DNA from: Lepidodermella squamata
Lineage: Eukaryota > Animalia > Gastrotricha
Direction of reading: 5' to 3'
NCBI GenBank assembly: GCA_047495785.1
Contig: JBLDXI010000009.1
Location: forward strand, 248,001-312,000
Length of the DNA stretch: 64,000 bases
How positions within the stretch are numbered: position 1 is the stretch's first letter; every line of letters begins with the position of its first letter. Position numbers and translations under genes: made by a program. Shown piece after piece: positions 1 through 57,507 of the stretch. The notes under the pieces were generated by a model that was given only the letters and a program-made list of their open reading frames with translations, was not told the origin of the DNA and made no database searches.

Positions 1-3000
1 CAACATTAATAAGGGGACAACATTCTGTACAGCCCTTAGCGCCAATTTTAATTTTTTTCATAAAAGTCTAATAGTTTCAGGGAAATTCAACTGAATGAAA
101 GCGTTGAGAAGCACAATAATAACGTGTCGACTTGGCAGACGAGCGCAACTCGCCACAAAGAGGCATTTCTTAATTTATGCCAAACGTGCTGACGACATTT
201 CGCACAGCGATGCCGCCTGCTGCTATATGAGCCTGCTGGTGTGCCGCTCTACACGTTAGGTTGAATGAATTACCTCGTGATGTATGCGAAATCATGGCTT
301 GCATATTTTCTGCTGGAAGGAATGAAATATTGCTGAGAGAATACCACAGAGCTGCGATTATTTTCTGCTTTTAACTATTTTGTAAAAGCAAATTTGAAGG
401 TCTCACGTGAAAATAGCCTGGTTTATAATAACACGTGGGTACAGGGTACATTAACGATGCGCTGTGGATTCGAATGTTCAATTTTTGTAAATGAATAAGA
501 GTACCTATCCTTTAATGCCTTAGTGCAGCCAATATTTATTCTTATTTCTTAGTCAGCAAAGAGCAGGTCAAACATGCAATCTGCACATTTCGCCAAGGCG
601 ACACTCGATAAACGATTAAACGAGCGCATTTTGAAAGCCCATCTCAATGCTATCAACTTGAACCGGCCGGAACCAGCTAGGTACTTTGAAGCTAGTATGA
701 CGATAGTGACCAATGTGACCAAGGATTAGAAGCTTATTTCGAATTCTGAAAGTCTCGAAGTCTCAAGCAATCCACCGTAAAAAGTGGATATTTGATTCTA
801 TTTCGTTAAGCTCCTCCTAAGGATAGCTGGATTAAGGTGTGAGAGCACCGCCGCCAAGCGAAATTTCAAAAAAAATCTGGAAAATTATTTGAAAAAAAAA
901 TCGGCGAAAATAGACCAGGCGCATATAAAATCATCACGTTAATTAGCCGAAGGCCGTGTCGATGCTAGCGAGCTACCATAATATCGAGCAAGCCATTGAA
1001 AACGAATTCGAATTTTCTTGATAGTTCTGGATAAAAGGTGATGCTATGCATTTTGAGGGAATAATTCAACAAATGTCCCTGCACTTACGGCTTACAGGTT
1101 TATCTGAACGTCCTTTATTCTTCCTACATTCTTCCTCCTACATACGCATGCGTTAAGTAGGTAAGATGGGTTGTTAAAAAACATACTTCGACTTTGAATT
1201 ATCTATATCCTTTTCTTAAACATCACATTTTGCGAATGCAAGAACGACTCTGTGATTGGTAAGCAGCTGAGAGATCGAACGAGGGAAAGAAGAAAGGACA
1301 TCGATGTCATGACTGCTGGGGAGATTACCGAACAGCATCGCATTTAGCATTATTGTAAAATCACAGCACAGAGAAATATTGGACAAGACGGCGTGGTAGC
1401 CCAGAGAGTTTAGACTTTCCTTTAGTGGGACATTTATCAGCGGTATACAACACTACTTGTGGCGCGAACGTAGCCGTGACAGCAGACGGGAGGACGTCGC
1501 GCACAGAAGCGCTAATGAGTGATTAAACCTAATAGGTAATATTAGTAAAACAAGGTGGCCTTGTTGTACGGCTGCTGTATCATATCATTGCCATATCAAC
1601 CTAGTCGCTGTCTTTGTCACTGCCGTTGGTCGGTCGGCACCGCCGTCGCAGGCGTATTAAAACAGTGTCGGTAGCAGAAAGCCGTCAAGTTTGCGCGCCA
1701 AGAGCCAGACAGCTGTCATGCATATAACGTATTATGGGATTCCGTCTCGTCGTGGTCTCATGCGACCCCAGTATTGCTCACAACAAGCGACCTCATTGCC
1801 TGTTTACATAAGCATGTTTCCACCTTGAGACGCTTTACGCCTTAAAGGTGAACACCCTTGGTTTACATCACCATCATCATATAGCGTGTTGATGAGCGAG
1901 AGCGAACAGGAGCGAACATTTCGTTACCATGTCATTTAGACTACGGAAGTGGGCTTCGTGGTGAAGGCAATAAAAATATACCGAAGAAGCTAATAAAAGA
2001 CTTATGGAAGCATGTGTTAATTCTATGTTTTTCCGCTGAAGAGAAGGACAAGAAAACCTTGTAGGTACGCAAGGTGGAAATCTGACATTTTTCTGTTTCT
2101 GTTTAAGTGAGGTTTTTCTCGAGCAATAGCAAAGCGTGGCAATATCCAAGTTCCGCAGTGGCACCGAATTTTCGTTAATTCTAACGCACATTCAATGCGA
2201 AAATGGGATAGGGAATCTCAACTTGAATTTTTCGAGTTCGCAAGTCGATTTTGTGTTATTTGACGAATAATATTCCTTCGAAAGCGAGGCCAGATCAAGC
2301 AGTGCAGTATGCTGACGAAATTTGTGCAAGTGAAGCCAATTTTGAAGTAAAAAAAGCAGAAATGTGACAGAAATGCGCTCTCTATAAAATATCCTTGAAT
2401 TGTCGAAATTTAGGGCCATTTAACAATTTATTTGTGTTGACATGACATGACAAAACATGATATCTGAGAAACTACAGCCAAGTGGACCAAGTCTTTTATG
2501 TACACGACGGAAAGCCGAAGACGTAGTAGAGATTTGCGATGGTCTCCTATTACGCCAAATTACCATTATAATACGACAATCACGGTGGCGCAGCAAATGC
2601 CGATCAGAGCAAAAAAAGGCCCCAACTAGTTTGGGTTAAGCTGATTTCTAAAAAGTTAGCCACTTCCTCGATATTCCCTCATTGCTAGGCATCCAGCTGG
2701 GCCCATTGAACCCAGGTGGTTTACTTTGGTTACTTCAAGCCTGTCGGGCGACATCTAATGATGACCATTAAGCTATACTATAGAAAACAATAACAAGCAT
2801 AACAATCATACAGCGTGTCGTGCAAATAGTCCTATGTCCAAAAAATTTGAACTCTGAAGATTTCATGCTAACCGTAATCTAGTTTCCACGCATAATCGAA
2901 ACCCGCCCAGTCAAACAACGCCAGGGGTCAAAAGTCCTATGTCTACTTTCGCGGTTTTGTTTTCCAGGCCATCATCATCATCACCAAGCGGATGAAAAGT

Positions 3001-6000
3001 CCAGCACGATTTATTCAGTGCGATATGCGAAGCCAAGTTTAAAATAAAAGCTCTATTGCTGACACTAAAAAAATCGAACCAATAATGCCTAAGAAAAGCG
3101 TAAAAAAAGTGCAAAAAAGTATAATTTTGAAAAAATCCCAAATCCCACTTACAGCAGTAACAGTCACAAAAGCAAAATCGGGCCTATGCTATGAACGTTA
3201 TGAACACCACAACAGAGAGAAAGAAAGAACAGTAACAAGAAAAATTGGGCTTATCACCTATGGTCCATCGCCTATGATCGCCCATGATCCCTCCCCGAGC
3301 AGAGAGCGTAAAAGAAGTCAAAGAAGAGTGAACGTTTGCCGAGACCACCAGCAAACAGTCGGTGTTATGATGATAAATTTACGTTGCCGTCTATGCGATA
3401 GATGCGAAATATCCCGTGATATACACGACTTGAGCCATGCGAAAAACATCATCACTCCGCTGCTGTTGAGTTCGTGCGCCTTCTTTGCCGCGCTCGCTTT
3501 GTTCTTTCTTTCGGCTTAGCTCCGCCGCCGTGTTTTGTGTCTCATAAATGCCCCGCTTTGTACATTGTACATCTACAATCACCGTGTGTTGTATATTTTG
3601 GCGTGCCGGCGGTTCCCGTGCTCGCTTCGGACACACATTATGATTCTCAGGCACACTAGATATAATACTGATAATAATATATTAAAAGTAAGAATCATCG
3701 TACGATACGCTGTGACATGGAAGCTATATTATATTGAGAAACATTCTGCCGGCCGAGCGCCGTTTGTGCAGCGCTAAAACCATGCGCCTGCGGCCTGCTT
3801 GCCAATACCTACCTACCTACCCAGCATATTATACATGTGTGGCACGACGACGACGGCTCAGATGCGCCGTGTTTGAGTGTACCATCTTATTATTATTATT
3901 ACTATTATTATAAAGGGCGGTGAGAACAGCTCAGCAGACTATCACCACGACTATTCAACACCGATTGTGTATTCAGTGACTTACCCTAAGGCTGGAGCGC
4001 AAATGGCCTTCGATCTGCAGTAAATACCTTACCCTCATCCTCATTGTCGTCGTCATATATGCTGCTCTGTAGGCCAGTTTGCGCTACGCTTTACCTTCGA
4101 CTTATCATTTTATTGTCATACTACTATATATATCATATAGTCTGCGACCAACGACATCGTTTTACGCTGCAGTAACGATATAATTACTATATTATTAATA
4201 CTTTCCATTTATTACTATTATTATTACCCTGTGCGTATTTGTAGGCGATGCTGGAAGTAGATTTTGCCAAATAATAATGTCAAGGATGACACAGAAAACG
4301 GCGAGCAAAGAGTTCTGATGCTGCTGCTGCTGCTGGAGAGAGGATCCTCAACATCATCATCATCATCGCGCGCCAGTTCGTAATTCTACATTACAGGTTG
4401 CTAAAAAAGCGACGGCACATCATCTTTCCTTGAATAAAAATCCATTCAAGCATTGTATGTACAATATAAGGGAATATTGCGCACATGAAATTATCAGTAT
4501 TATTATTAAATGCCTTACGTAGATGTACCTCATCGAGAGAAACGACCAAGTGTTTGACTGAGAACAAGGTTATGAAGAGGAAATGGCGCACACCAGCCGA
4601 CCGAAAGTCCGCGACCGAAACGCGTTAATTATCGCGCCACGCTTCGTTGACATTCTTTTTTCTCGTGTCCATGCATAATATTTCTATAATATTACCTGTT
4701 TTCTTCCATTCTCCTTCTACCATCGCTTCTTTCATATTAATTTCTTTTATTCTTTCCTCTATTCTTCCACAAAATAATATACTCTATATTATAATCTTCC
4801 AGGTTTCATACCTATATTCCGAATTAATAATAATGTGAGTGCGATTGAAATAACAAAGGAAGGGAAGAAATGATTATAATAATATGACTTGCAGCATCAG
4901 CATCAAATTTTTGACTGCTCTTTCACTGTTGGACAATAAAATAGGACGTTCATGATCTAGCAGAATCGAAGGCGAAGCTGCGAAATATTGGCAAAATCAT
5001 GAGTATGCTGCTGGTTATGCCGGATGCCGGTTCTTCATTGTTGTTCAATGGTGGCAGATATGACACTGAAAATCGGTGGTTTCTTCTCATCATGAATTTT
5101 ATTCCGCATTTTTCGGCATTATATGACACAAATAGGTAACATTTTTGCAATTTCGATGGTCATTACGAATAGCAGGTCCTTATAGGCAAACCTTTCCTTC
5201 GAGTGTCATACTTTTTATATCAATTATTAATGTGAATAAGGGCGCAGTTCAATTGCTTTCTCTCGAAAATATATATATTTATATGTGTGTACATTCGTTT
5301 TTTATGCCGTAGTTTTACCAGCACGATGAGGGCGTCGGACTGTTCTTTCACAAGCGATTATATAATTACATACAGCTCATCAGCTGGCAATTACTACTTG
5401 CGGTGCTCCTGATTCGCAGTAATTAATGATTAGGTTCAAAGATAAATAAGGAGACAATGCAGAGACTATCTCTGTTAATATATTTACAGCAAAAGAAATT
5501 TACATTATTTAATAATATAGTTAAGAACTAAGATAAATTTCATCGACAAGAAGGAAACACCGAAAAGCCAGCACTAACGCAAGTCGCCATTGATGAAGAT
5601 GCGATGGCGAGACTAACAAAACTTGAGGCCAAACATCACCATATAGATATATCTTCGGCATGCAAACCCAGCGTAGTTTCACACGTGGATTCAACGACTA
5701 CACAACGGAGAAATCCAGGAAATCTTCCAAGTAAGAAAAGACATAGGAACTGTACATCCCATACGCGCTTCTTTAGTTAGCCAGAACAAAAAAAGACAAA
5801 TTAAAGATAATATAGTATAAGGCCAAAAAGCCACAAAGAGATTTCGACAGTCCACCGGAAACACACGCACACATCAAGTGATTATTATTCACGAGATAAT
5901 TTGTCAAAAGTAATCACGCCCGTATCTCAGATCAATTGGAAGGCTGCCGCATGAGGCAAGCAGCTCTCATAATGGAAATGTCATACATAACTCGTGTGTG

Positions 6001-23430: not shown

Positions 23431-26400
23431 TCACTCATCCTCCTCCGGTTCGTTATCTGAAGACGAGGAGTTCTTTTCGGATTCGCTTTCTGAAGACGAA
23501 GAGTCAGAGTCCGAATCAGCTGCTGTAATTTTCGCAGGCAAATTAGGGCGGATGGAAGAAGGGGCATTTGCTTGTGCCTTCGCGCGTTTCAAAGGCGAAT
23601 CGGCCCCGCCCAGAACAGAAAGCGTGATGTTATCATCTTCGTCGTCGTCATCATCTTGACCGTGGCCATTCCCGTTGCTAGTGGCGCCAACAAGGCCTGG
23701 CGGCTTAGGTGCCATGGTCGGGCGCAACACGGTGCTGGTCAGCGCCGGAGTTGTCCAGCCACTACCGACAGAAATGTTGGACAACTTTCGTTTTCCCCTA
23801 CCTCGGCCAGCCACAACCACGGTCGAAGCAGCAGTTGATGGCGGCGCCATCGGGGCAGCTATCATCGTGTCGTCGGCAGTCAAACTTCGAGTGTACGTTT
23901 TCATTGCCTCCAATGTGTCCCCGGTAGGTTGAGCGGACCCTAGGGCAGTGACAGACTGGTCGAGTATCTGCTTCACGTAACCGCGATCCTGTCGCAGGAG
24001 TTTCGGAACAAATTCGTTGAGCAGGTCCAGGTAAGGCAGGTCGGCGGGTACGGTGCCAGGGGCAGTTTGGCGGAAGGCGAATTTGATGCCAGCGACGTGA
24101 AGCGCGACCACTCCCTGGCGGGCACGAGTCGAATCCACGCCGAACGACATGACCAGTTTCCGGGCCAGTTCTCGGGCTGGGATAAGCTCCGGTGCCGACC
24201 GGGAGTACGGTTCCTTGCGATTGCGCATGCACGCCAAATAAACCGAAACCAAGCCGCTGTGCATGGCCTTGCCCGTTTCTTCTTGGCTAATTTCACGGCA
24301 CTTAGCAAGAGTGATTTTAATCAGGTCGTTGTAGTCAGAATTGTTCTTGGCGTAGTAACGAATCAAAGGCACTATAGCAGACGGGTCCAGTTGACCGCAC
24401 ATGATCAAGCGAGTCAGCGCAGCTATGTTGTTACGGCGCGTCGTCAATCGCTCCAAATTCCCAACATCATTTGCTCCGTCATCTGCGACCCCGGTGTGGA
24501 GCGAAGACTGTGATTCGGTGTCGTTAGCGTTATCCCGACCACTGGCGGCGCATTGGGTCATTTGGTCACTGATAAACTTTATAATTGTATCCTGAACACG
24601 AGCGGATGGCTTGTAAACCAGCGGGGCCATGGCCGCTTTTGATTCAACCAGTTGAGATGGGAAAATGAGCAAGGTATCACACAAACACGAGAAAACTGTA
24701 TCGAAGGAGCGCTTGAGCCCGTCAATCTCTAAAACGGCGACTAGCATGTCGATGAATGCTGATTGCAGACGCAAAATGTTTTGCTGTGTATTCAAATCAT
24801 CGGGATAGTTCGATAGATGATGCGTCAGCCAGGCTAGTGATAGATACACACATTTGGCAGCCGCCTCGACGGTCTCGGACTCCGAGCTCGGAATTTTGCG
24901 ATCGGCTGCAAGCCGTAGAATCGTCAGGCAAGGCTCTACTATTTGCCACTTGGTCAGATCGTGGTGCTGGAAGAATGCAGCCAGTTTCCGAAGACAAGCA
25001 AACAGTGTAGCGTAGACCAGTTTTGAGCCGTGGTCACTTGCCCATTCACGTTGCGACAATTCTTGAAACGCATTTTGAAATGTTCCCGTGGTCGAATCGA
25101 GCAAATTATTTCGCGCAATCAAACAACGCGTTGAAATGTTGTACTTATCGTCACAAAATATCTCGAAGGCGCCAGCAACTGCCTTCAAGATGTCGGCATA
25201 CGTATGCCGTTGCACTATATCTGTCAAGCATCGTAAGGTTTGGTCCATGCTACGTTCGAGGCGGTTTTTAGTGTACACGTCGAGATCGAAAAAGGCTGGC
25301 AATTCGAGCAGGAGTGTAATTTTTTCCGAATCAGCGACGAATCGACTGAGCAAAAGAGGAAACGCAGGAATGAGGATTTCACTGAGGCGCCGGCGCTCAG
25401 CCTGCAGTGACTTTTGAGCATCACGAGTCGGCTTAGCATGGTGTTGTTCACGTCCCGGTGGAGGATCGCCGGTGGCAGACTGACGGGCAGCACTTACAAG
25501 AATGTCGACCATTGCTGTACATGGTGATAGGCTAGACGTTGCTTGCGATTCATCTTGATTGATTTCATCGGAGTCATTCATCAGAATCTGCACCATAGCA
25601 TTCCAGTCCCTGAGCATGGGTGAAACAGCCCACAGACTGTCGACCACGTAACTGGCGTGCTGGTGCAAACCCGATTGGACGATGAAAAGCGCAAGGGTGC
25701 GAAGACACTTTGCATTAGGAGAGACAAGTTGTTTCTTTATCGGTTGAGAGGCGCCGTTCGCATTCGAACTAGCGGGCTTGGCCCGTGATCTTGCTGAACG
25801 CCGCGGCCCACCTGGGGTTTCTTGAGCTGAAGAGTCCTGAGACGCAACGCTCGTTTCAGCCACATTTTGCGCCTCATCATTTGCCACGACTGCGCTAACT
25901 TCATTTGGATTAGGCTCAACAGCTTCAGTGAAAAGCCGTCCGTGAACAAAGGCGCCAGCCGCATGGGCAACCTCGCCGTGGCGGGAGAACACTAACTCGT
26001 AAATGGATTCGCATTCTCTCGCTTCGAGAATATCAGGGTATAATTGATCAATTGTTGTAAGGAGACGTGCAGCTTTAACGGCCACTTCATTCTCTTTGTC
26101 GAAAGTCATTTCCACAAAGCGACGTTTGAACCTATGTTGCAAAGATTAAGTTCCACAATTCATAAGCTCATATATTGACCAACCTCCCAGTAAACAGCTC
26201 CAGCTTATGTTTCAGCTCATCGTGGGCGTATAGTGGTTCGAGGGCTTTCAAGCAAGCCAGTCTCACATCGCTGACCTTATCGCTTAATGTCCACCCGATG
26301 TACTTGAGGTAGGAATCGTCCAAGAAGAAAGCCGGGTGTTGCAGCATCCAGCTACCAGCCTAGATAAATCAAGTGATGAATATTCTATTCAATTTTAAAT

Positions 26401-28837: not shown

Positions 28838-31800
28838 ATGGGAAATAAACTGAGTGGATCTAGCTCATCGAAAAATGCTGTTCTGAGCGGTGGCAGCTCT
28901 AATGGTAGCAGTATTATATTTTCCAAACTCATATATATTTGACGAGTTTATTTTCTGCAGATTTGAAAAGAGTTTTAGCGGCTTTCAAAAGTCTTGCTGG
29001 TCCATCAGATTTTATTTCGAGAGATCAATTTTTGTTCGATGTTTTTGGTGGCTTTTTACCGCCTTGCTTTGGCAATGTAAGTTTATTCCGTCATTAATCG
29101 CGCGATTAGCATTTTCTGATTTTTTTACAGCGCCTTTTTGAGGCCTTTGGTGGAACCAAGAAAGGTGTCAGCATTAAGGATTTGATGGATGGCCTGTCTA
29201 TATTTTTGATAAGCGATCAAAAATCACGACATAAATGTTTGATTATACTTTAGTATTTTGATTTTAATTGAGTTGCGTTTTCCCTTGCAGTTGTATTTCG
29301 ATTTTATGCCGGCGACGGTGATACTCTATATAAAGATGAATTTATGAGAAAACTTCGCGAAGACCAAGACGTCAATAGCTCAACCAGCTTATTGTTTCAA
29401 AACGTGAGGAGTTGCGATGCGATTGCACTTATATATATATATATTGTCTTACTCATGTATAGGATCAGAGCGTCGATTTTTTGGCGTTTTCGAATTGGCT
29501 TCAAAACAACCCGGATGCACTTGACATACACCGCTTGCTGACACAAGGTCTTTCACTGACTACAGCGCCGGAGAAATTTATCCCATCGTTTCATCAAGTT
29601 CTTGCCGGAATCACTCATTGTATGAGGCAAATTTAACTTCGAGTGAAATATTCACGTGTCTTTTGTTTAGTTAATGAAGAAAATGTGGCCTCACTGGAAC
29701 GAACGTTTTGGCAACTAGTTAATTCTTCACCTAGTCACCAGTTTGATTCAGCTGTTTTTGTGAAAATTGTTTCTCCACCGCTTTCTCCTGATGTGGCCAA
29801 GCTGTTGTTTTCTTCGTTCGATGACCGCAAAGACGGCGTGATTGACTTACGGGAGCTTGCAGCTGGCATTTCAGCATGTTGCTACGGCCCAGTCGTTGAA
29901 CGAACTAAATTTATTTTCCGCCTATTTGACACCGACGAGGACGGGCTACTTAAACCAGATGAGATAGACCAAATGTTGACAGCATTACTGAAATCGCAAG
30001 TCTTGATGAGGCCTAATTCCGCCAGCTCATCATCAGGAGGCTCTGTTGTTTTCTTACTATCGGATATAACAACGATAAGGGAGAATATCCTTGCAACTTC
30101 AGCCAATTTGACTGCAGGTGGATCTTCCTTAGGGTTGAATCTTGAGCAGTTCCTCCAGTGGACGCTGACTTGCTCATTGCATCAGCCTTTTCTGGAAATA
30201 TTATTTCAAGTGTGCCATATTGCCTTTGGTCTCCGGCCTCCCGATAAAAAATTCGAGGGAGCTATCATCCGGTCGTACTTGGAACGATGTGATGCAACCG
30301 AACTGATTCCTGGGGATACAATTTACCTGATACCTTTGACATGGTGGACGTCTTGGTGTTCATGGGTCGGTTTGCAGACAAAATCACAAATATCTCGCAC
30401 CTCGTCAATCAAATCACAAAGCAAGCCTAATAACTCGCCAAACTTGAGTAAGCGACCGTCGCCGCAATTTCAATCGTCGAAAGAGGTGTATCAAACTTCT
30501 GTTAGCGATACCAACATAGCAAATAATGGTGATGCTAACGTCGCGAAAGCTTCCGAACCGAATGGATCTATTTCTTCAAACGGTTCTGCATTTCACACTC
30601 CAACAAAGCGGCCTGTTTTGCGACAAGGCCGATTTGTCGCAGCCGCTTCAGAGTTGTTGGACACAAAGCAGCCTAATCAAGAGCAAGAGCCGCCAGAACC
30701 AGGCCAAATAGATACCTCTTCACTTTTATCGAATATGCAAGCTCCGACCGAGCACAACAAAATATGTCTGACACCGGACGCCAGTCGCCCGCTTCGTGTC
30801 CAAATGGCGCCTTTCAGCCCAGGGTACGGTTTCGAAGTTCTACCAGCAAGTGTTTGGCTGGCTTTCCAGGCCTGGTACGGCATCAAAGCCAACACATCAC
30901 CGGTGATTCGTCGCGTCGTCGTTAACACGGTGACTTCGTTGCCTGAAATCGAATACCAACCGATTAGGCTGGCTTTTGTCCGCCAATCTCAACCAGCCAG
31001 TAACCAGTCATTCAATGCTGCACAAGCAGCGGCTGCTAATCAAGCCATGTCATTCGGTATCGGCATCGGCTCGGCGGCTTCGTTCATGAAGTCAGTGTTC
31101 AGTTCGTCTAACAACTACGCCTATCCTTCACCGGGCGGTCCCCACCAGGTCCCGGCCCCGATTCCAACTTTGTCGGGCAGCGTGAGTTCCGCCGATTCTT
31201 CTGCGGCGAATTCTGCTCAGAATACTGCGAACAAGTATTACGATGCAGCTTATGGCTATTACAGCCGTTGCGCTACTCTTGGCGAAGTGATCAAGTCATT
31301 CCTTGGGCGATTCCACTTGCATCAAGACTCGATTCGTCTGTGGCTGCTCAGAAGCGGTAGCCAACAGAATGTCGCGGCGGCGAAACGTGTGCTGATCTGG
31401 TCACCTGGCCAGCCGGACTCGGTTACCCTAGCGCAGGCCTTCACGATTGCATCGGAGGATTTGAATGTGATAGATTTTCGGATTTTGATCGAAGTTGCTA
31501 ACCTTGACCAGTCTTGGCCGGAGGATGCGCATCTGGAAACGAATAGCGTAAACGGGCGCGATTCACCGCGGCCAAGTGACGGCCAGTCAGTCAGTTCCAA
31601 CTCATCAGGTGGCCTAATCGGGTTCCAAAATTTGGGCAATACGTGTTTCCTGAACGCGGCATTGCAGTGCCTGTCAAATACTCCGCCTTTAACTCGCTAT
31701 TTCCTGCGAAATATCCACTTGCACGAGTTGAATATGGCGAACCCTCTTGGTTTCCACGGCTTGATAGCGCTGCGTTACGCCGAGCTGATCGCTATGGTCT

Positions 31801-33791
31801 GGAAAACTGGCTCGCCCAAATCGAACCAGAAACCATTGTCCCCGGCTAAGATCAAAAATTTGATTGCGAAAACGTGGAGCCAGTTCGGCGATAGCGAGCA
31901 ACAAGACGCTCAGGAACTCATGACATTCCTGCTTGATGGCCTTCACGAAGACCTGAATCGGAAGCGGCAAAAAAGTGAAGAAAATGGGGAGGCTGACTCG
32001 GCGCAGAAAGAGCCTGAGCTGAAAGGCGTTGAACTGGCGTGGAAGAAGCACCGCGAGTTCAATAACTCGATTATAGTCGATTTATTCCACGGCCTGCTGT
32101 CGTTCGAAATCAGCTGTCCGCAATGCAGACATGTCAGCAAGACGTATGACCCGTTCAATTACTTGGTACTACCCCTGCCAGTCGACCCTAAAGTCACCGT
32201 CGAATTAACTGTGATTTTCCTGGATGCAACTCGCCAGCCGCTGCGCGTCGGCGTCCGCGTTTCATCCGGCTCGCCGTGCCGCGAAATCTACGACCAATGT
32301 GCCAAAGTGGTGAAGGCGGGCGATGCGAAAATAGACGACCAATTCTTATTAGCCGAAGTGTTCAACGCTGCGGTCGTCCGCTTTTTCGACGCGACTGATG
32401 CACTGGGTCTAATAAACGGCGAACTGGTTTTGTACGAGCTGGGCAGTCGCAAAAAGCAACCTCAATCTGAGCATTGCCACGTCGGTGGTCTGGCTGGATG
32501 TGCGGAGGAGAAGTGTCGCCGCCGCTATGCCGTTTACGACCAGCTGTACGTGCCGATTTCGTGGCGTGATCGCTTCGTCGTTGTTGTTAACCGCCAGCTG
32601 ATTGCTATTCAGAGGTATGTGTTGCCCCAGCTGAACTGGAGGCCGCAGTTTTTCGGCCGGCCTTACATCGTGCCGATGCCTGGTCTCGAAAATGGCTCGG
32701 ACACAGCTCGCCGGCAGCTCTACGACGATATTTGGGCGAGGGCGCAGCGCTACCTGACCCCGAGCGCGAAACAGGACCCGAAATTCGCCGTTGTTCCGAA
32801 CGTTTCCGGCGGCAATTACGCGAGGGATGGCGACTTTCCGCCTGAAAGCGCTGCCCATCCTTTCCCATTCGAGCTATGCAAAGTCACTGGGCCGGCGTGC
32901 CAACGCTGTTCCGTGTGCCCGTGGAGCAATTTCTGCCGCGGCTGTGCCATTTCGTATAACGCGGGGGAGTCGACGGCGGAGAGCCAGGCCGATCAGGTCG
33001 CCGACTTATTCGAGCCGTTTTTGGCCATAAACTGGGACCCTCGGACTATTTTCCTGCATTTCAGCCATCATGCCGAATCAGCTTTTCAACTGCACGAAAG
33101 CGTCGAGGCGTGCCGACGGAAGGACGTCGAACCGCTGTCGCTTACGGACTGTCTGTCGACCTTTTCGCAACACGAACCTGTCGACGGTTACGTATGCGAG
33201 CAGAAGGAGTGCCCGTCTCGCTCCACGCCTGTCACTGCCTCGAGCCACATGTGCCTGGCTCGTTTGCCGCCGATGATGATCGTTCATCTGAAACGGTTTT
33301 TCATGGCTCGCGACGGCCGCTGGATGAAATCGGCGCGGCGCATTAACGTGCCGGTTGAAAGCGACCTCGACCTGGTGGAATACATAGCCAACGAACAAGC
33401 GGGCGCCGCTGCTAAGGGCTCGTTTCGATACAGGCTGTACGCAGCCGTGTGCCACTACGGCGCCCTTCGCAGTGGGCACTACGTGACCTACGCGAAGCAC
33501 CAGCCGTCGGGTGTGTGGTACTTCTTCGACGATACGTCAGTACGGGAAGTCCAGCCGGCTGAAATCGACATGTCCGCCGTTTATTTGCTGTTTTTTGAAC
33601 GTGCCGAGCTCGACTATGACACGCTGCTGCCGTCGATTGACGAATCAGCGACGCCGCCGGCCATGAGCGCGGTCGAGGCGTTGCGGGCTGCTGAAAACGC
33701 CGAGGAACAGCGTCTTGTTGACGCGAAAACTCGAGGGCTGAACAGCGGCGATGCGGCGTCTTCGGGCGCGTCTCGCTGCTCGCTGCAGTAG
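28838..33791 (+). CDS. USP32: Ubiquitin carboxyl-terminal hydrolase 32
   Basis: Spliced N-terminus MGNKLS... (myristoylation-type) with RLFEAFGGTKKG; EF hands (DDRKDGVIDLRE, DTDEDGLLKPDE); DUSP (YLIPLTWWTSW); Cys box GFQNLGNTCFLNAALQCL; QQDAQE; CSVCPWSNFCRGC insert; His box HYGALRSGHYVTY; C-terminal CAAX CSLQ. This is the USP32 architecture. Confidence 0.93.
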
Positions 33792-50948: not shown

Positions 50949-52459
50949 TCACTTCGGAGGCTGGAAATGAGGAGGAGGGTGGAACATGCCCGGCGGCGGC
51001 GCGAACATGAAAGGCCGCGCCGCTGCGCTCATGTCGGCGTGTTGCTGCTGCTGCTGGTGAGCCTGGTTCGCCAGGGCGCTCATAGCTGCGGCTAACGGAT
51101 TCTGAGACAGGCCCTGGTTCGAAGCCGAACTAGACGGCGTGGAAGCGCCACTGCCGCTAACGGAAGCGACCAACTGCTGCTGTAAAGCCGGCGGCAGCGA
51201 TGACATGAACATCGGGTTCGCCATGTGGGGCGGCAACCCGCCCGGGTGATGCATAGCGCCCGGCGGTGGGCCCAAGATGGGAGACGGCGCTGGTGGATAG
51301 CCGAGAAACATCGCGGCAACTTGCTGCTGCTGCTGTTGCTGTTGACTGTGGGGCGAACTTGACGGCTGAGGAATCGGCCACGGGCTCATCGGAGGGGGCG
51401 GTGGCAGTTGTTGTTGCTGCTGCTGTTGCTGTTGCATCTGAGACTGTTGTTGAGCCTGCTGCTGAGAAGACGCATTGGACGAAGCCGGTGTCTGTGGTCG
51501 GCTGTTTTGTTGCGCCTGTTGAGCGGCAACCTGGGCGGCCAAAGTAGCAGCAACCATCTGAATTTGGAATATCTGGTGGTGCAGCAGGTCGCTAGACATC
51601 GGATTAGCACCAGACATCGGCGATTGCATCGACATCGGCATCTGGAAGCCGCCGCCCGAGCTGCCTGGCATGCCGAGGCCAGGTGGGAACATGGAGCCCT
51701 GGCCGGGGGTAGGTACAGCGCTGGGCGGAGCGAATGGATCGGGTGTTTGCGTCGGCATCATTGGCGTATGAGAAGGCGTTGGTCCCAACGGCCCGGAGCC
51801 GCCCGTTGCTGGCTGAGGTGAGGCGGATGGTGACGAGGCGGGTGAGATCGGTTCGAAAACTGAGACCGGGCCAGAAGGCTGTTTCTGTGGTGGCTGATTG
51901 CTAGCTGAGGTCGATGGAAATGACATGGACGAACTCGAGGCAGACAGCGACGAAGAAGGACCAGCGCCGAAAGCAGCTGAAAAAAGATTACAGCTCTTAT
52001 ATCAAGTTAACTGACAGCCCTACACTCCTTAATTTCTAATTCAATTTGTCAATCATAGACAAATAATAAGAGACGGGACACTCAAGCCATTTCAATACTG
52101 CCGAAATTATTCAAATTTTCCATTTAAAATTCCTCCTTTAGCATATTTTCAAAGAAATTTTCAGAAATTTTCGAATTTCAGCCCTTTCTTTATCCTGCCA
52201 TTGCAACGATAGTTATCATTTGTCTATGATGTCGATAATAGTTGTCTTTTTTGTTTTTTTCAGGTCAAATCAAGTATTGTTGAAAACTAAGGAAATTACA
52301 TGGCATATTGGACATAGAAAATGATCGTTGACTGCTAGACGACGGCTGATTTTGTTGCTGCTGTTGTTGTTGTTGCATTTGTTGCAATTGTTGCATCTGC
52401 TGTATTTGCTGCATTTGTTGATGTTGCTGATTTTGAAATTGCTGTTGTTGTTGTTGTTG

Positions 52460-52490
<31 letters not shown>

Positions 52491-55400
52491 TGTTGTTGTT
52501 GATGATGTTGTTGCTGCTGTTGTTGCTGCTGTTGAATTTGTTGCTGAACTTGTTGCTTAAACGCAGCCATGGCAGCTTGGCTAGGCCCCATTGAATGCAA
52601 ATTTTTCGAATTCGGATTCAAAGGAGGCGGCGACGGTGCCACCGGAGTACCCGGTTGCTGTTGCTGCTGGGGTGTCTTGTTGGCCAGAGATGACAACACC
52701 CCGGCGGGTGGGGTGCCGGCAGTTGCTGCTCTAATAATGTTCTGAAGCAGCTGCGAATGAGCCGGCCCGGTATGACTGGTCGGCGGCTGTGGTAATTGCT
52801 GATTCGGGGTGGAGTGCTGCTGTTGCTGCTGATGAGCGGCCTGCGACGAATTCGGCGGCGGCGAGCTGATTCGGCCAAAGTGCTCGGCAATCAGCTGGTC
52901 CATCAAGATGCGAGTAGTGAGCATTGGTGCCGGCGGCTTGCCCATTTCATTGCTGTTGCTGTTACTGCTCGCGGATGAGGGCTGCGGGGGCGGCGTGGCT
53001 GAGATTGGTCCGCTTGATGGTGCCATGGCGGCTGGCTGTTGACCCGACGAACTCAGAGACCGGGCTACGCGTTGCTGTAAAACAAGTGCATCATTAGCGC
53101 TTTATTGCGCGCAAATCAATCAACGCACACGTCAAATCAAAGGCGCGAGCGGTGAAATCAATGAGCATTGCATACACGCGCACAATATATGTTAAGCTTT
53201 CGGCCTATATCCTCAAGTTTTGTTCTTTCTGCAACAATGATCGACTACAATACGTTTTTGGAGGCGCTGGAGGAGTATCGAAAAAATCCAGGTAAGAATG
53301 GGCTCATTTTAGCCAAAAAATTGTAATTTTTCTCAACCTCAGACGGGTCAACTCAAATAGAAAGCAATCGCGAAACAGCGCAGCCGCAAGTACAGAAGCC
53401 CGAGCCGCAAGCGATAGCAACGCAAAAGCCGGAGAAATCAGCCCAGCAGCCGCAAGAACAGGGTTGTGCTTTCTGCATCAGCAACAAAGAGCGACCGACT
53501 ATTTACAAGAGTCACAGCATCAAAGACGAGCAGGGGCGAGTCACGTGCCCAGTCCTACGCGCCTACATCTGCCCGCTATGCTCGGCAACAGGCGACAACG
53601 CTCACACGATTCGCTACTGCCAACGAACGGCTGTGGGCGCGCGAACAAGCGGGTTTTTACGCACGCCGAGAAACAGCGCTGGGCGTGTTATCCGCCAACA
53701 GAAGCCGTGAATTCAATGTACTAACGCTGCTAACTAACACTGATTTTTAATCAATAAAATATTATAAATACTCACTAAAGGTTGTGCTTGAGCTTGCTGT
53801 TGATGTTGTTGTTGTTGCTGTTGCATCTGAAGTTGCTGGTACTGCAGTTGAAATTGCTGCAACTGCTGTTGCTGCTGCTGAGCCATCTTCTCTTCAGGCG
53901 TCAAAGTTTGCTGTTGCCTCATTTCATTTTCGATACGCTCTAGAACCGATGCTGAAACTATGACCGATTTCGGGACAGACTTGGGCGATTGCCGAGCAGC
54001 CGGGTCTAACGCTTTAGCCGCGTTTAAAATTGATAAACCAGCCTGAGGCTGATGATGCTGTTGTTGCTGCTGCTGTTGCGCGTGCGCTGGAGGCGGCTTG
54101 CTCGGAGGTAAAGCAGCCATGATTTGTTGAAGGGAAACAGTCGGCTCCGTGAAAATCGGAGTGCCATGCGTTATCGAACCCATCGGAGTCGCCAAACGTG
54201 GCCGAGGCGCCTCCTGTGGCGGAGAAGTTGCCAGCAGGGCTGGAGGTGCCGGCTGGTTGAGATTTTTCGTTATAACAGGCGCTTGACTCGACTGCTGTTG
54301 AGGCGTTGGGGGTTTCGGTGCCTCGATTTTGACGGGTACAACAGGCTCTGGTGGTGCCTTTTCTTCAACTTTGATCACCACAATAGGCTGGGTCACCGGA
54401 GCAGGCGGCTGCGTTGGCGCTGGCGTGAACGATTGAGGAGCATTTGGTCTCAGAGTTGACAAACTGCTCAATCCTGGAGCCATGACAGCCTGGCCAGTGC
54501 CAATTCCTCCAGCAGGTGCGGCTAGTAACGACATACCAGGACGTAAAAATGCCGAAGGATGAGGAGTATCGGGCGAAGCACGCTCTCCTGATAGCTGTTT
54601 ATCGATAGCTTCAGCCAGAAAATCTCGGATAGTCGATGGGTTGGGAGGCACAGGCGTCAAAGCAGGAACAGTGCTATCCGGTGACTTGGAGCGCTTTTCT
54701 TGAATTGGCGGAGGCGAAGGTTCGACCGGCCGAGGTTTGTCCACTTCCATTTTCTCGTCCGGCGACTTGAGGGCAACTTTCGGAGAGATCGAAGCAACCT
54801 GTGGCGGCTGCGGTTGCTGCTGAGGCTGTTTTACGGGTGAAATAACTGAGACAGGAGTAGGCTGAATCACCTCAACAGGTGGTTCCGATTCTGTCTTGAC
54901 AACAACGGAAATTTCGGACGAAATCTTGACGGGCTCTTCAACAAGTGGTTTCGGTTCTTCGACTGTTCGAATGACGACTGTTGGCGGCGGCGGTGGCATC
55001 GGATCAGCTGAACTCGTATCCATAGGGGTTACTTCGTTATTTTCACTGGCAACGACATTCTGGTCCTTGGCATCGTCAGCTGGCTTCACCATATCTTCTT
55101 TGTCAACCGTGCTGTTCTCAGCGGTTGCAGCCGCCGAAGCCGCAGCTTTTTCCGCCCGTTCCTGGTTCGCAACCTTCGCCTTAATTTTGCGCTTCAGATC
55201 GACAAGGCGGTCTAAACGCAGATCACACTTTCGGCTGAAGTAGAAATTGCGGCATTCTGAAGCGGTTCTCGTTCCGACCGCTTCACTGACGGCAGCCCAG
55301 TTGCGGCCGTTGTTATAAAGCGCCGTTTTCAGCTCTTCGACCTCATCCGCAGCCCACTGAGCATCCTCGGCAACTGAAACCAGCCAGCTGTTCGTCGACA

Positions 55401-57507
55401 TGCGCTCGCTGGAGTCAGAGCAAGTCTCAGACTCACCTCGGCGCCGCATTTTCCGGCTCTGGCCGTTCTCGCGGTCGTCGCCACCACCAAACGCAGTGCC
55501 AGGCGAGTCAGACATCGCGCTGGCGATGCGCTTCCGGATGCGCTGGAAACAATTGGCACAGCACTGGGTGCCACCAGCGGCTGGGATACCGAATTCGGTT
55601 AAAATATTGTCGCGGACATCTGTGGCCAAGCGCGGCCATTTAGCCGGCAAAGCCTTCAGCCGTGCCAATCGGCGCTTAGGGGTGCGACACGTTGGCAGTG
55701 GGCACTGAAAGAACTTCGAATTCACAACATTGGACCAACAAGAGTGGCAAACTCGAGGATTCGCAGCGGTGTCAATCTCTTTGCAACCATCTTTAACAGG
55801 CTCCTTGGCCTTATTTTTATCCGGTTCTTCCGAAGTAGATGTAGCACTTTCTGTAGCTTTAATTCCAAATAATTCAGATCGAGCTGCATCAACAGCTCGT
55901 GAGTAACTGTAACTTTCCAACTTGATGCCACATGAATGGCATACATGGGATTCAGCTGATTCACCTTCATCTGAGTCTTGTTGTTCAGAAGCAGACGCAG
56001 CAGCATCTTCATTGTCATCCTTTGTTTTGCTCTTCTCCTCTTTATTTCTCTCAGCATTAGCACTACCGGCAGCAGCACCCCGCCTGGGCAATGTTTGTTC
56101 AGCATCCGTGGATTGGCTAGCGGTCTAGAAGATAAACACAAATATGACTTCAACTACTCGAATAGCTCTTAGAAGGTCAAACCTGAACACGCATCAAAGT
56201 TTTCGTCTTTGGACGAGGTCGAGGATAACGCTTAACCAAAGCTTTGTAGCCTTGTTGATGCTTTGTTGCATAATAATAGTGAACGCAATCCGAGACGGAC
56301 TTTCTCGGCAAAGCAGCCGCAATCGCAACAAAATCTTTGGGACGCTGAGCGAATTTTTCGCGGAAAACTGCTCGATCCCTATCAGTCCACTTGCTTCGAG
56401 CTGTGCTTTGCCAGCGTTGGAAAACGAGGTACGGGTCTTTCATAAACCCATTGCGATTTATCAAACGGCAACGATCTTCTGGGCCAAGCATCGTAGGAAC
56501 GACACACGCTGCGGTTCGCATGCGTTTCTCCTCTTCCTCTTTCTCTTGCAGATTGTCAAGGATTTGATCAATGTCGACGTCACTTTTGGCAAATCCTGTA
56601 GCCGTAACATTTCTGGCTCCTAATCGCTGACAGCGCTCGCGCTCCTCGCGCTGTTTACGTAGCTCAGGAAATATCTTCTCGAAATACTCACGCGTTTTTT
56701 CACGCTTGGCCCTGGTGAAGTGCATAAAATTATACAGCTTTTCGAAGAGATTTAAACGCTAAATTACTTCCGCTTTGGATCATTCTCAAATTCTTCAACA
56801 GTTCGAAGCCACTGTTCGTGAAGTTCGTCATGCTGCTTTGCGAGGATTTCTTCCTAAAATCGTGAAATCGTGAAACCAAGTATAATCAGTGATGACCAAT
56901 TTACTTGTTTAGCTTCGTTTTCAAGTTTTCTCTTGATCATTGAGACTAGTTTTTGCTTGAAGCCATTCGCGAATCTAACATTTGAATAATAAGTTTGAGA
57001 GAACGTAACTGGCCTTGAGGTTTTACTTTGCGCGGATCTCTTGAAGCTGTGGAATGTCTGCAGGTTGATTGTAAAGAGGCTGTTTTACAATCAGAAAATC
57101 AAATAAAGAAATGATAATTTAGCAATAAAATATACCAATGCAGAATGTGATGCAGCCAGAAAAGAATGCTGCTGCTGCGCTTTTCTCTGTAAATTTCGAT
57201 GACAGCTCAAGAGATTATGTCACAAACTGTAAAATATTTACCCTGTTTTCAGCGTAAACTCTCATTATAAAATTATTGTCGACGTTTATTTCATCTTCGA
57301 GCTTGGCGGATGATAAAACTTCGGGATCATATACGCGCAGCCCATCTTCCAAAGATTTCTATAGCAGCGAAATGAGTTAATGCTTTATTCACAATTCACA
57401 CGCCAAGAAATACTTACATGTCTCTGCCTAACCGTTTCAATTTCAGTTTTGAGTGCAGATATTTGCACTTCTATCAGGCTTAATTCTTCTTTCTCTTGAA
57501 AATACAT
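50949..57507 (-). CDS. NCOR1: Nuclear receptor co-repressor NCoR/SMRT (SMRTER/GEI-8) orthologue, multi-exon
   Basis: GPS2-interacting region (VYAENR, PLYNQPAD, REYFEKIFPELRKQRE); SANT1/DAD (WTDRDRAVFREKF..PKDF..KSVSDCVHYYY.TK); SANT2 (W...E...L...GRNWAAVSEAVGTRTASECRNFYF); GSITHGTP motif; CoRNR-box-like TIRDFLAEAI and TTRILMDQLIAEHF; FEPISP. The 5' end is approximate, since small upstream exons are possible. Confidence 0.9.
52351..52555 (-). repeat. Coding CAG/CAA polyglutamine tract in NCoR
   Basis: Visible (TGC/TGT)n runs on the + strand; they translate to long polyQ runs in ORF 52265..53026. Confidence 0.9.
53113..53191 (+). promoter_or_regulatory. Candidate nanos proximal promoter with three AAATCAA motifs and a TATA-like element
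   Basis: AAATCAA at 53113, 53134 and 53155 (21-bp period); AATATATG near 53184; lies 46-124 bp upstream of the nanos ATG. Confidence 0.35.
53237..53710 (+). CDS. nanos: Nanos (double CCHC zinc finger), 2 exons, 140 aa, nested antisense in an NCoR intron
   Basis: Exon 1 53237-53291 (MIDYNTFLEALEEYRKNP), intron 53292-53342 (gtaag...ctcag, 51 nt), exon 2 53343-53710. Exon 2 encodes CAFCISNKERPTIYKSHSIKDEQGRVTCPVLRAYICPLCSATGDNAHTIRYC, which is exactly C-x2-C-x12-H-x10-C-x7-C-x2-C-x7-H-x4-C, followed by TPRNSAGR and TGA. It is absent from the ORF track because the ATG is in exon 1. Confidence 0.95.
53753..53758 (+). terminator. Candidate polyadenylation signal of nanos
   Basis: AATAAA 43 nt after the nanos stop codon, in AT-rich sequence just inside the host intron boundary (53775). 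Confidence 0.5.

Follow-up and report, generated by a model that had tools for sequence, protein, structure and literature searches.

A complete nanos gene lies antisense within an intron of the NCoR/SMRT co-repressor gene of the gastrotrich Lepidodermella squamata

The window analyzed here is a stretch of 64,000 nucleotides from the genome of Lepidodermella squamata (GenBank assembly GCA_047495785.1, contig JBLDXI010000009.1, positions 248,001 to 312,000 of the forward strand), and coordinates are counted from its first letter unless another contig is named. A gene for the nuclear receptor co-repressor NCoR/SMRT lies on the minus strand, modelled from 56710 down to its stop codon in the exon 50949..51976 and with small exons further upstream, and one of its introns holds a complete, two-exon nanos gene on the plus strand. 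In the feature list below, L011 is a 5204-bp ENA metagenome contig from a relative and X2 is a run with spliced RNA, identified by a joint at 56710/56767 with CT..AC ends (a minus-strand GT..AG intron).

56711-56766, minus strand: host upstream intron, spliced in an X2 contig
56183..56710, minus strand: host exon with deacetylase-activating domain (DAD) and SANT1 (PDB 4a69_C, the NCoR2/SMRT DAD, E 6.5e-19, chain residues 4-94)
53776..56124, minus strand: host large exon with Cys-rich region, SANT2 and disordered P/Q-rich body (Myb_DNA-binding, 32.2 bits)
53075..53775, minus strand: host intron holding nanos, 701 nt, phase 0, GTGAGT..TTACAG
52300..53074, minus strand: host exon downstream of nanos, with two CoRNR-like motifs and then polyQ (in-frame model; tblastn to L011, E 1.8e-4)
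52862..52927, minus strand: CoRNR-like motif 1, PMLTTRILMDQLIAEHFGRISS (compare NCoR ID1, ..HICQIITQDFAR)
52706..52765, minus strand: CoRNR-like motif 2, PAHSQLLQNIIRAATAG (compare NCoR ID2, LEDIIRKAL)
51977..52299, minus strand: predicted second long host intron, 323 nt, GTAATT..TTTTTTCAG, in frame
50949..51976, minus strand: host last exon with stop codon (in-frame model; C-terminus ..PPHFQPPK common to L011)
53237..53291, plus strand: nanos exon 1, 55 nt, 18 codons and 1 base, from translation; N-terminal motif MIDYNTFLEALEEYR
53292..53342, plus strand: nanos intron, 51 nt, GTAAGA..CCTCAG (GT..AG)
53343..53710, plus strand: nanos exon 2 including the stop codon, with linker, zinc finger and RNSAG tail (translation and Pfam)
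53465..53623, plus strand: zf-nanos domain, two CCHC fingers (Pfam PF05741)
53753..53758, plus strand: AATAAA, likely nanos poly(A) signal by pattern scan, putative in function, 17 nt before the host 5' splice site

The nanos coding sequence (53237..53291 joined to 53343..53710) comprises 140 codons followed by TGA and spans 474 nt. The splice is needed, as exon 1 read on without it closes 11 codons further on. An alternative start is possible at 53189, where an in-frame ATG lies 16 codons ahead of that at 53237; similarity to the nanos of the relative starts at the Met at 53237, which lies 162 nt from the host acceptor. A mobile-element origin of nanos was considered and rejected: the gene bears no sign of a transposon or of retrocopying, is not flanked by inverted or direct repeats and matches no Rfam family.

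Both CCHC fingers of the product are canonical, with the spacing CX2CX12HX10C-X7-CX2CX7HX4C and starts at CAFC and CPLC. Pfam zf-nanos (PF05741) matches at 90.1 bits (E 1e-25, profile positions 1-53 of 54) against a gathering cut-off of 27 bits, and the locus scored 91.6 bits in a genome-wide search; the perfect Nanos double-CCHC finger claimed in an earlier, sequence-only reading of the window is thereby borne out. The N-terminal 17 residues, M-x-D-Y/F-x-T-F-L-E-x-L-x-E-Y-R, are identical to those of the relative at 10 of 17 positions, and in L011 this motif is contiguous with the rest of the coding sequence. The NOT1-interacting motif (NIM) of vertebrates reads F-x-x-W-x-D-Y-x-x-L (PMC4003280), and of this the window motif has only the D-Y and a hydrophobic residue at +3/+4, the F and W being absent. 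Judged by its residues, the motif resembles the NIM in position and in aromatic, hydrophobic character and is not a canonical NIM. By analogy, the product is most likely an RNA-binding partner of Pumilio and would recruit CCR4-NOT, repressing mRNAs in germline or stem cells. We infer this molecular function, and likewise the expression of the gene.

On the host side, the model built from 56710-56183, 56124-53776, 53074-52300 and 51976-50949 stays open for 1559 codons. The large exon finds its best match in P0002 on L011 (46% identity, E 1.8e-93), and exhaustive HMMER searches gave as its named relatives the 'nuclear receptor corepressor 1' of ticks, a scorpion, Limulus, Timema, a springtail, molluscs and a hemichordate. 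The exon downstream of nanos encodes ..TRILMDQLIAEHFGR.. and, 45 residues on, ..HSQLLQNIIRAATAG.., the same order as ID1 and ID2 of NCoR, for which the CoRNR consensus is I/LxxI/LI/LxxxI/L/F, with HICQIITQDFAR in ID1 and LEDIIRKAL in ID2 (PMC7840129). Each window motif misses one anchor of this consensus: position 1 of motif 1 (MDQLIAEHF) is M, and position 9 of motif 2 (LQNIIRAAT) is T (A in L011). The corresponding exon of L011 has ..ARNLMDNLIHRHFG.. and ..HSQLLQQIIDVAA.., so that 11 of 16 residues of motif 1 and the L..II of motif 2 are conserved, and in the alignment of window and L011 both stand out as blocks of identical residues where the rest of the exon is diverged and of low complexity. 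They are near matches to the consensus, not proof of CoRNR function. Searches against PDB peptides gave no matches to the motifs, which as queries are too short to score, and the whole exon matched only low-complexity, Q-rich proteins. Pfam found no GPS2/TBL1-interaction region (PF15784) on the small upstream exon pieces, each scanned alone. According to this gene model, the 701-nt intron separates the NCoR body (DAD/SANT1 and SANT2) from the exon coding for the CoRNR-like motifs.

A Cys-rich block lies between SANT1 and SANT2 (55520-55790, minus strand, large-exon residues ~113-200; ..CHSCWSN..CPLPTCRTPKRRLARLKALP..CCANCFQRIRKR). It has no Pfam match, and it is through this block that most invertebrate NCoR proteins (ticks, Limulus, Timema, hemichordate) match the large exon; it could represent a zinc-binding module of invertebrate NCoR that has so far gone undescribed. 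The predicted 323-nt host intron (51977-52299) contains no evident gene or RNA family. Elsewhere in the window there are two very long coding exons: a single exon on the plus strand (29643-33788) that is open for 1382 aa and encodes the EF-hand, DUSP and UCH domains of a USP32-like deubiquitinase, and an exon on the minus strand (23434-26142) of 903 aa for the HEAT part of cohesin SA/STAG. A 69% identical relative of the cohesin was found only in an ENA metagenome (P0185), and the one other match to a cohesin probe came from a frog.

The intron that holds nanos has its minus-strand donor ..CCTTTA|GTGAGT at 53776/53775 and its acceptor TTTTACAG|CAACGC at 53075/53074, and the host junction across it is in frame (..AQPL|QRVARS..). 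The sequence-only reading had described a complete nanos antisense in a 701-nt NCoR intron, with a coding span of 474 nt and an in-frame junction, and our coordinates agree with it throughout. It had also called the intron over ten times the usual length, which holds against the other introns hereabouts (51, 56, and 58 or 64 nt) but not for the host as a whole, where the predicted 323-nt intron means that long introns are not unique to the one bearing nanos. Contigs of X2, mostly at least 99% identical, cover the host exons on either side, and depth is zero in every bin across 53079-53723.

The sequence-only reading had proposed looking for the pair in relatives and for further nanos copies in the genome, and had named a neutral dN/dS as a sign against its view. 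For relatives, L011 is the one contig from which conservation of the nesting is read. On its plus strand, six-frame reading and tblastn place the large NCoR exon, a 908-nt phase-0 intron (2623-3530), an exon beginning RPGGRSL... and a last exon ending ..PPHFQPPK. A nanos coding sequence (3171-2709) lies on the opposite strand within this homologous intron and is oriented as in the window, its 3' end adjoining the host donor and its 5' end toward the host acceptor, with an AATAAA ~9 nt from the donor. Between the two host introns, no conserved non-coding blocks were found above shuffled controls. The L011 nanos is uninterrupted at the site of the window's intron, while its own intron, of 70 nt, splits the finger, which means that introns were gained or lost after nesting and say little about origin. 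This weakens the argument, made in the sequence-only reading, that the internal intron speaks against a simple retrocopy. On the strength of the shared layout, the antisense nesting is old and inherited from a common ancestor with at least one diverged relative. Just past the nanos stop, the window reads UGUACUAA (53715-53722) where L011 (~2696-2689) has UGUACAUA, a perfect Pumilio-type UGUANAUA on the nanos-sense strand; in what would be a very short 3' UTR, this site may act as a small regulatory element or be due to chance.

The nanos proteins of the window and L011 are identical at 74 of 124 aligned residues, and at 59 of 75 (79%) over finger and tail. Over this latter part pN is 0.167 and pS is 0.893, a saturated value from which no pN/pS ratio can be computed, although the constraint is still plain. 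Conservation extends to the tail (TAVG..TS.FL.T.RNSAGR) and the N-terminal 17 residues and not to the linker. On these comparisons, nanos is not neutral and is under strong purifying selection. Two alleles are present in X1, the only run that holds the whole stretch, whose type is not on record and which we read as DNA from its unbroken intron cover and two-allele pattern. Over 53271-53429 the second allele has 13 base differences and 3 indels in 160 nt (~8%). All three indels fall within the nanos intron, with the AG kept, and the six exon changes (2 synonymous, 4 non-synonymous) are all in the linker, leaving the finger unchanged. The X1 flanks at 52950-53300 and 53400-53973 are without differences, and high heterozygosity is thus sharply local to the nanos intron and linker.

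Further nanos copies do exist. The 121-Mb genome has four zf-nanos loci, among which only the nested one has the canonical second finger CX2CX7HX4C. The genome search placed the other three as follows.

C55:291112-291261: nanos-like paralogue (L002/L008)
C15:4925840-4926044: nanos-like paralogue (L003/L009)
C13:1315912-1316118: nanos-like paralogue (L004/L010)

In all three the second finger is shortened to CX2CX4HX4C, and in two there is an intron between the fingers. In each, an upstream exon ends W..W.I.TAPGCPRK and a conserved LALDQLFENKRRWREKF directly precedes the first finger; the three may form a lineage-specific family derived from nanos. By finger spacing, the nested gene is the single canonical nanos orthologue of the genome.

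The reach of the nesting appears narrow. No nanos was found within the NCoR loci of Limulus (with 8.4 kb of N in the locus), the springtail Orchesella or the beetle Hypothenemus. A word-index search started from nanos returned one distant metagenome protein (P0001 on L007) and a scan of JGI metagenomes six further distant loci, all without NCoR flanks. More distant NCoR genes on L012 and L013 lie on contigs that end before the relevant region, and a search for relatives through the last host exon, swamped by low complexity, yielded none. With no nanos in the other NCoR loci and no NCoR flank at the seven distant nanos genes, the nesting is a lineage feature, seen in two species so far. Among named species the best NCoR matches are arthropods, closer relatives turned up in metagenomes only, and no nematode SL1 was found. 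The NCoR locus of Hypothenemus hampei (L022, 34260-35508) has an annotated antisense BTB-domain gene inside an NCoR intron, which means that NCoR hosts nested genes in other lineages too.

Other explanations of the locus have to be weighed. The minus-strand exons on either side of nanos could belong to two genes, as the sequence-only reading had itself considered: an NCoR without receptor-binding motifs and a Q-rich gene starting from the ATG at 53026, with nanos in the intergenic space. That ATG opens a 253-aa ORF, and the exon-exon joint is without a direct read, but a 125-letter X2 contig on 52956-53074 extends 48 nt beyond the ATG and ends exactly at the predicted acceptor. Its 6 overhanging letters do not fit the intron and are too few to place, and the 53776|53074 joint is thus supported indirectly. 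Moreover, the downstream exon of L011 has no ATG ahead of the first CoRNR-like motif and hence cannot start a separate gene, the window exon carries CoRNR-like motifs typical of the NCoR C-terminus in the order ID1-ID2, and the junction is in frame, phase 0 and at the homologous place in both species. Two genes are therefore very unlikely, and we conclude from the in-frame phase-0 junction, the X2 contigs and the L011 structure that the flanking exons are one NCoR/SMRT gene spliced over nanos. We give next to no credence to the nested nanos being a remnant that is silent or decaying, for example an old retrocopy, with the three other nanos-like genes doing its work. No nanos transcript was seen, as X2 contigs have no depth on nanos and no run recorded as RNA holds it, and the 4 non-synonymous against 2 synonymous allele differences in the linker would fit decay. 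However, the reading frame is unbroken, both alleles retain the splice sites and agree throughout the finger, pN falls far short of pS in the comparison with a relative whose silent sites are saturated, and the nested copy alone has the canonical CX2CX7HX4C second finger.

The nesting could also be functional, with nanos transcription or its antisense 3' end hampering NCoR transcription or the use of the host donor. Cells expressing nanos would then have less NCoR, or a truncated NCoR without the CoRNR exon, and a co-repressor would be uncoupled from nuclear receptors in the germline. Several features would suit such an effect: the layout is retained across a divergence at which synonymous sites are saturated, in both species only ~9-17 nt separate the host donor from the putative poly(A) signal of nanos, so the end of the nanos mRNA should reach the exon-intron boundary, and the intron falls exactly between the NCoR body and the receptor-binding motifs, so that an unspliced transcript would give a CoRNR-less protein, host read-through ending after 13 codons in the window and after 8 codons in L011. 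X2, in addition, covers NCoR and not nanos. Yet no truncated form of NCoR turned up, the two introns have no conserved non-coding block in common, and retained nesting with short spacing is expected without function in a compact genome. Coupling is also not a general requirement, as the NCoR genes of Limulus, springtail and beetle lack nanos. We consider functional nesting improbable. In its more specific form, the NCoR 5' splice site would be overlapped by the 3' end of nanos and blocked when nanos is transcribed, so that germline or stem cells make CoRNR-less NCoR. This would tie a repressor of translation to a switch of isoform in a co-repressor of transcription, and we hold it to be distinctly improbable. 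Regulatory coupling of nanos and NCoR, as put forward in the sequence-only reading, is speculation for which we found no evidence. We infer that coupling is probably absent and think it quite probable that this is an ordinary nested gene: the sole canonical nanos, with its own promoter and poly(A) signal, antisense in a phase-0 NCoR intron and with no interaction shown. The intron is 701 nt long rather than ~50-65 nt because it holds a gene. The nesting probably persists because an enclosed gene is hard to move undamaged in a compact genome, not through any shown interaction of the two genes.

The locus is a trap for gene prediction. The mechanical ORF list of the window has no entry in the nanos frame and a gene caller run on the L011 contig also missed the nanos of the relative, just as the sequence-only reading had anticipated when it warned that automated annotation would probably drop the gene. 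With a 55-nt first exon and a site inside another gene, nanos would be missed by ORF-based or overlap-averse pipelines, and since the genome has no other canonical nanos, an annotation without it could wrongly suggest nanos loss in a poorly sampled lineage. That reading had further supposed the arrangement to be undescribed. This stands for the pair, as a full-text literature search found no paper on nanos nested in NCoR, but not for the class, nested antisense genes being well known; intronic genes make up ~6% of Drosophila genes (PMC3786989). Nanos in NCoR adds one case to a class of arrangement common in genomes and no new mechanism, and matters mainly for annotation. The pair is a clean synteny marker for the lineage and a possible test case for the regulatory consequences of long-retained antisense nesting.

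Compared with the Nanos family (Drosophila nos and vertebrate NANOS1-3), the window gene encodes a complete zf-nanos domain, in which the two CCHC fingers are canonically spaced. Its product is likewise short and disordered in its N-terminal part, and has at the N-terminus a short conserved motif in which aromatic and hydrophobic residues abound. The gene differs in that this motif has neither the F nor the W of the NOT1-interacting motif of vertebrates and in being nested in NCoR; to our knowledge, the nanos genes of human, fly and worm are not. The host resembles NCoR/SMRT (NCOR1, NCOR2, Drosophila Smrter and C. elegans GEI-8) in its DAD and SANT1, its SANT2, the length and disorder of its body and, toward the C-terminus, CoRNR-like motifs in the order ID1 then ID2. 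It differs in departing from the CoRNR consensus at one anchor per motif, in its very Q-rich tails and in the Cys-rich block between the SANT domains, which other invertebrate NCoR proteins have too; a GPS2/TBL1-binding N-terminus was not detected in its small upstream exons. As a nested gene, nanos is like 2mit in intron 11 of Drosophila tim2, a complete opposite-strand protein-coding gene in an enlarged intron of a larger host. The nanos-NCoR pair differs from such cases in being absent from the literature searched, and in a nesting that is conserved at a divergence with saturated silent sites.
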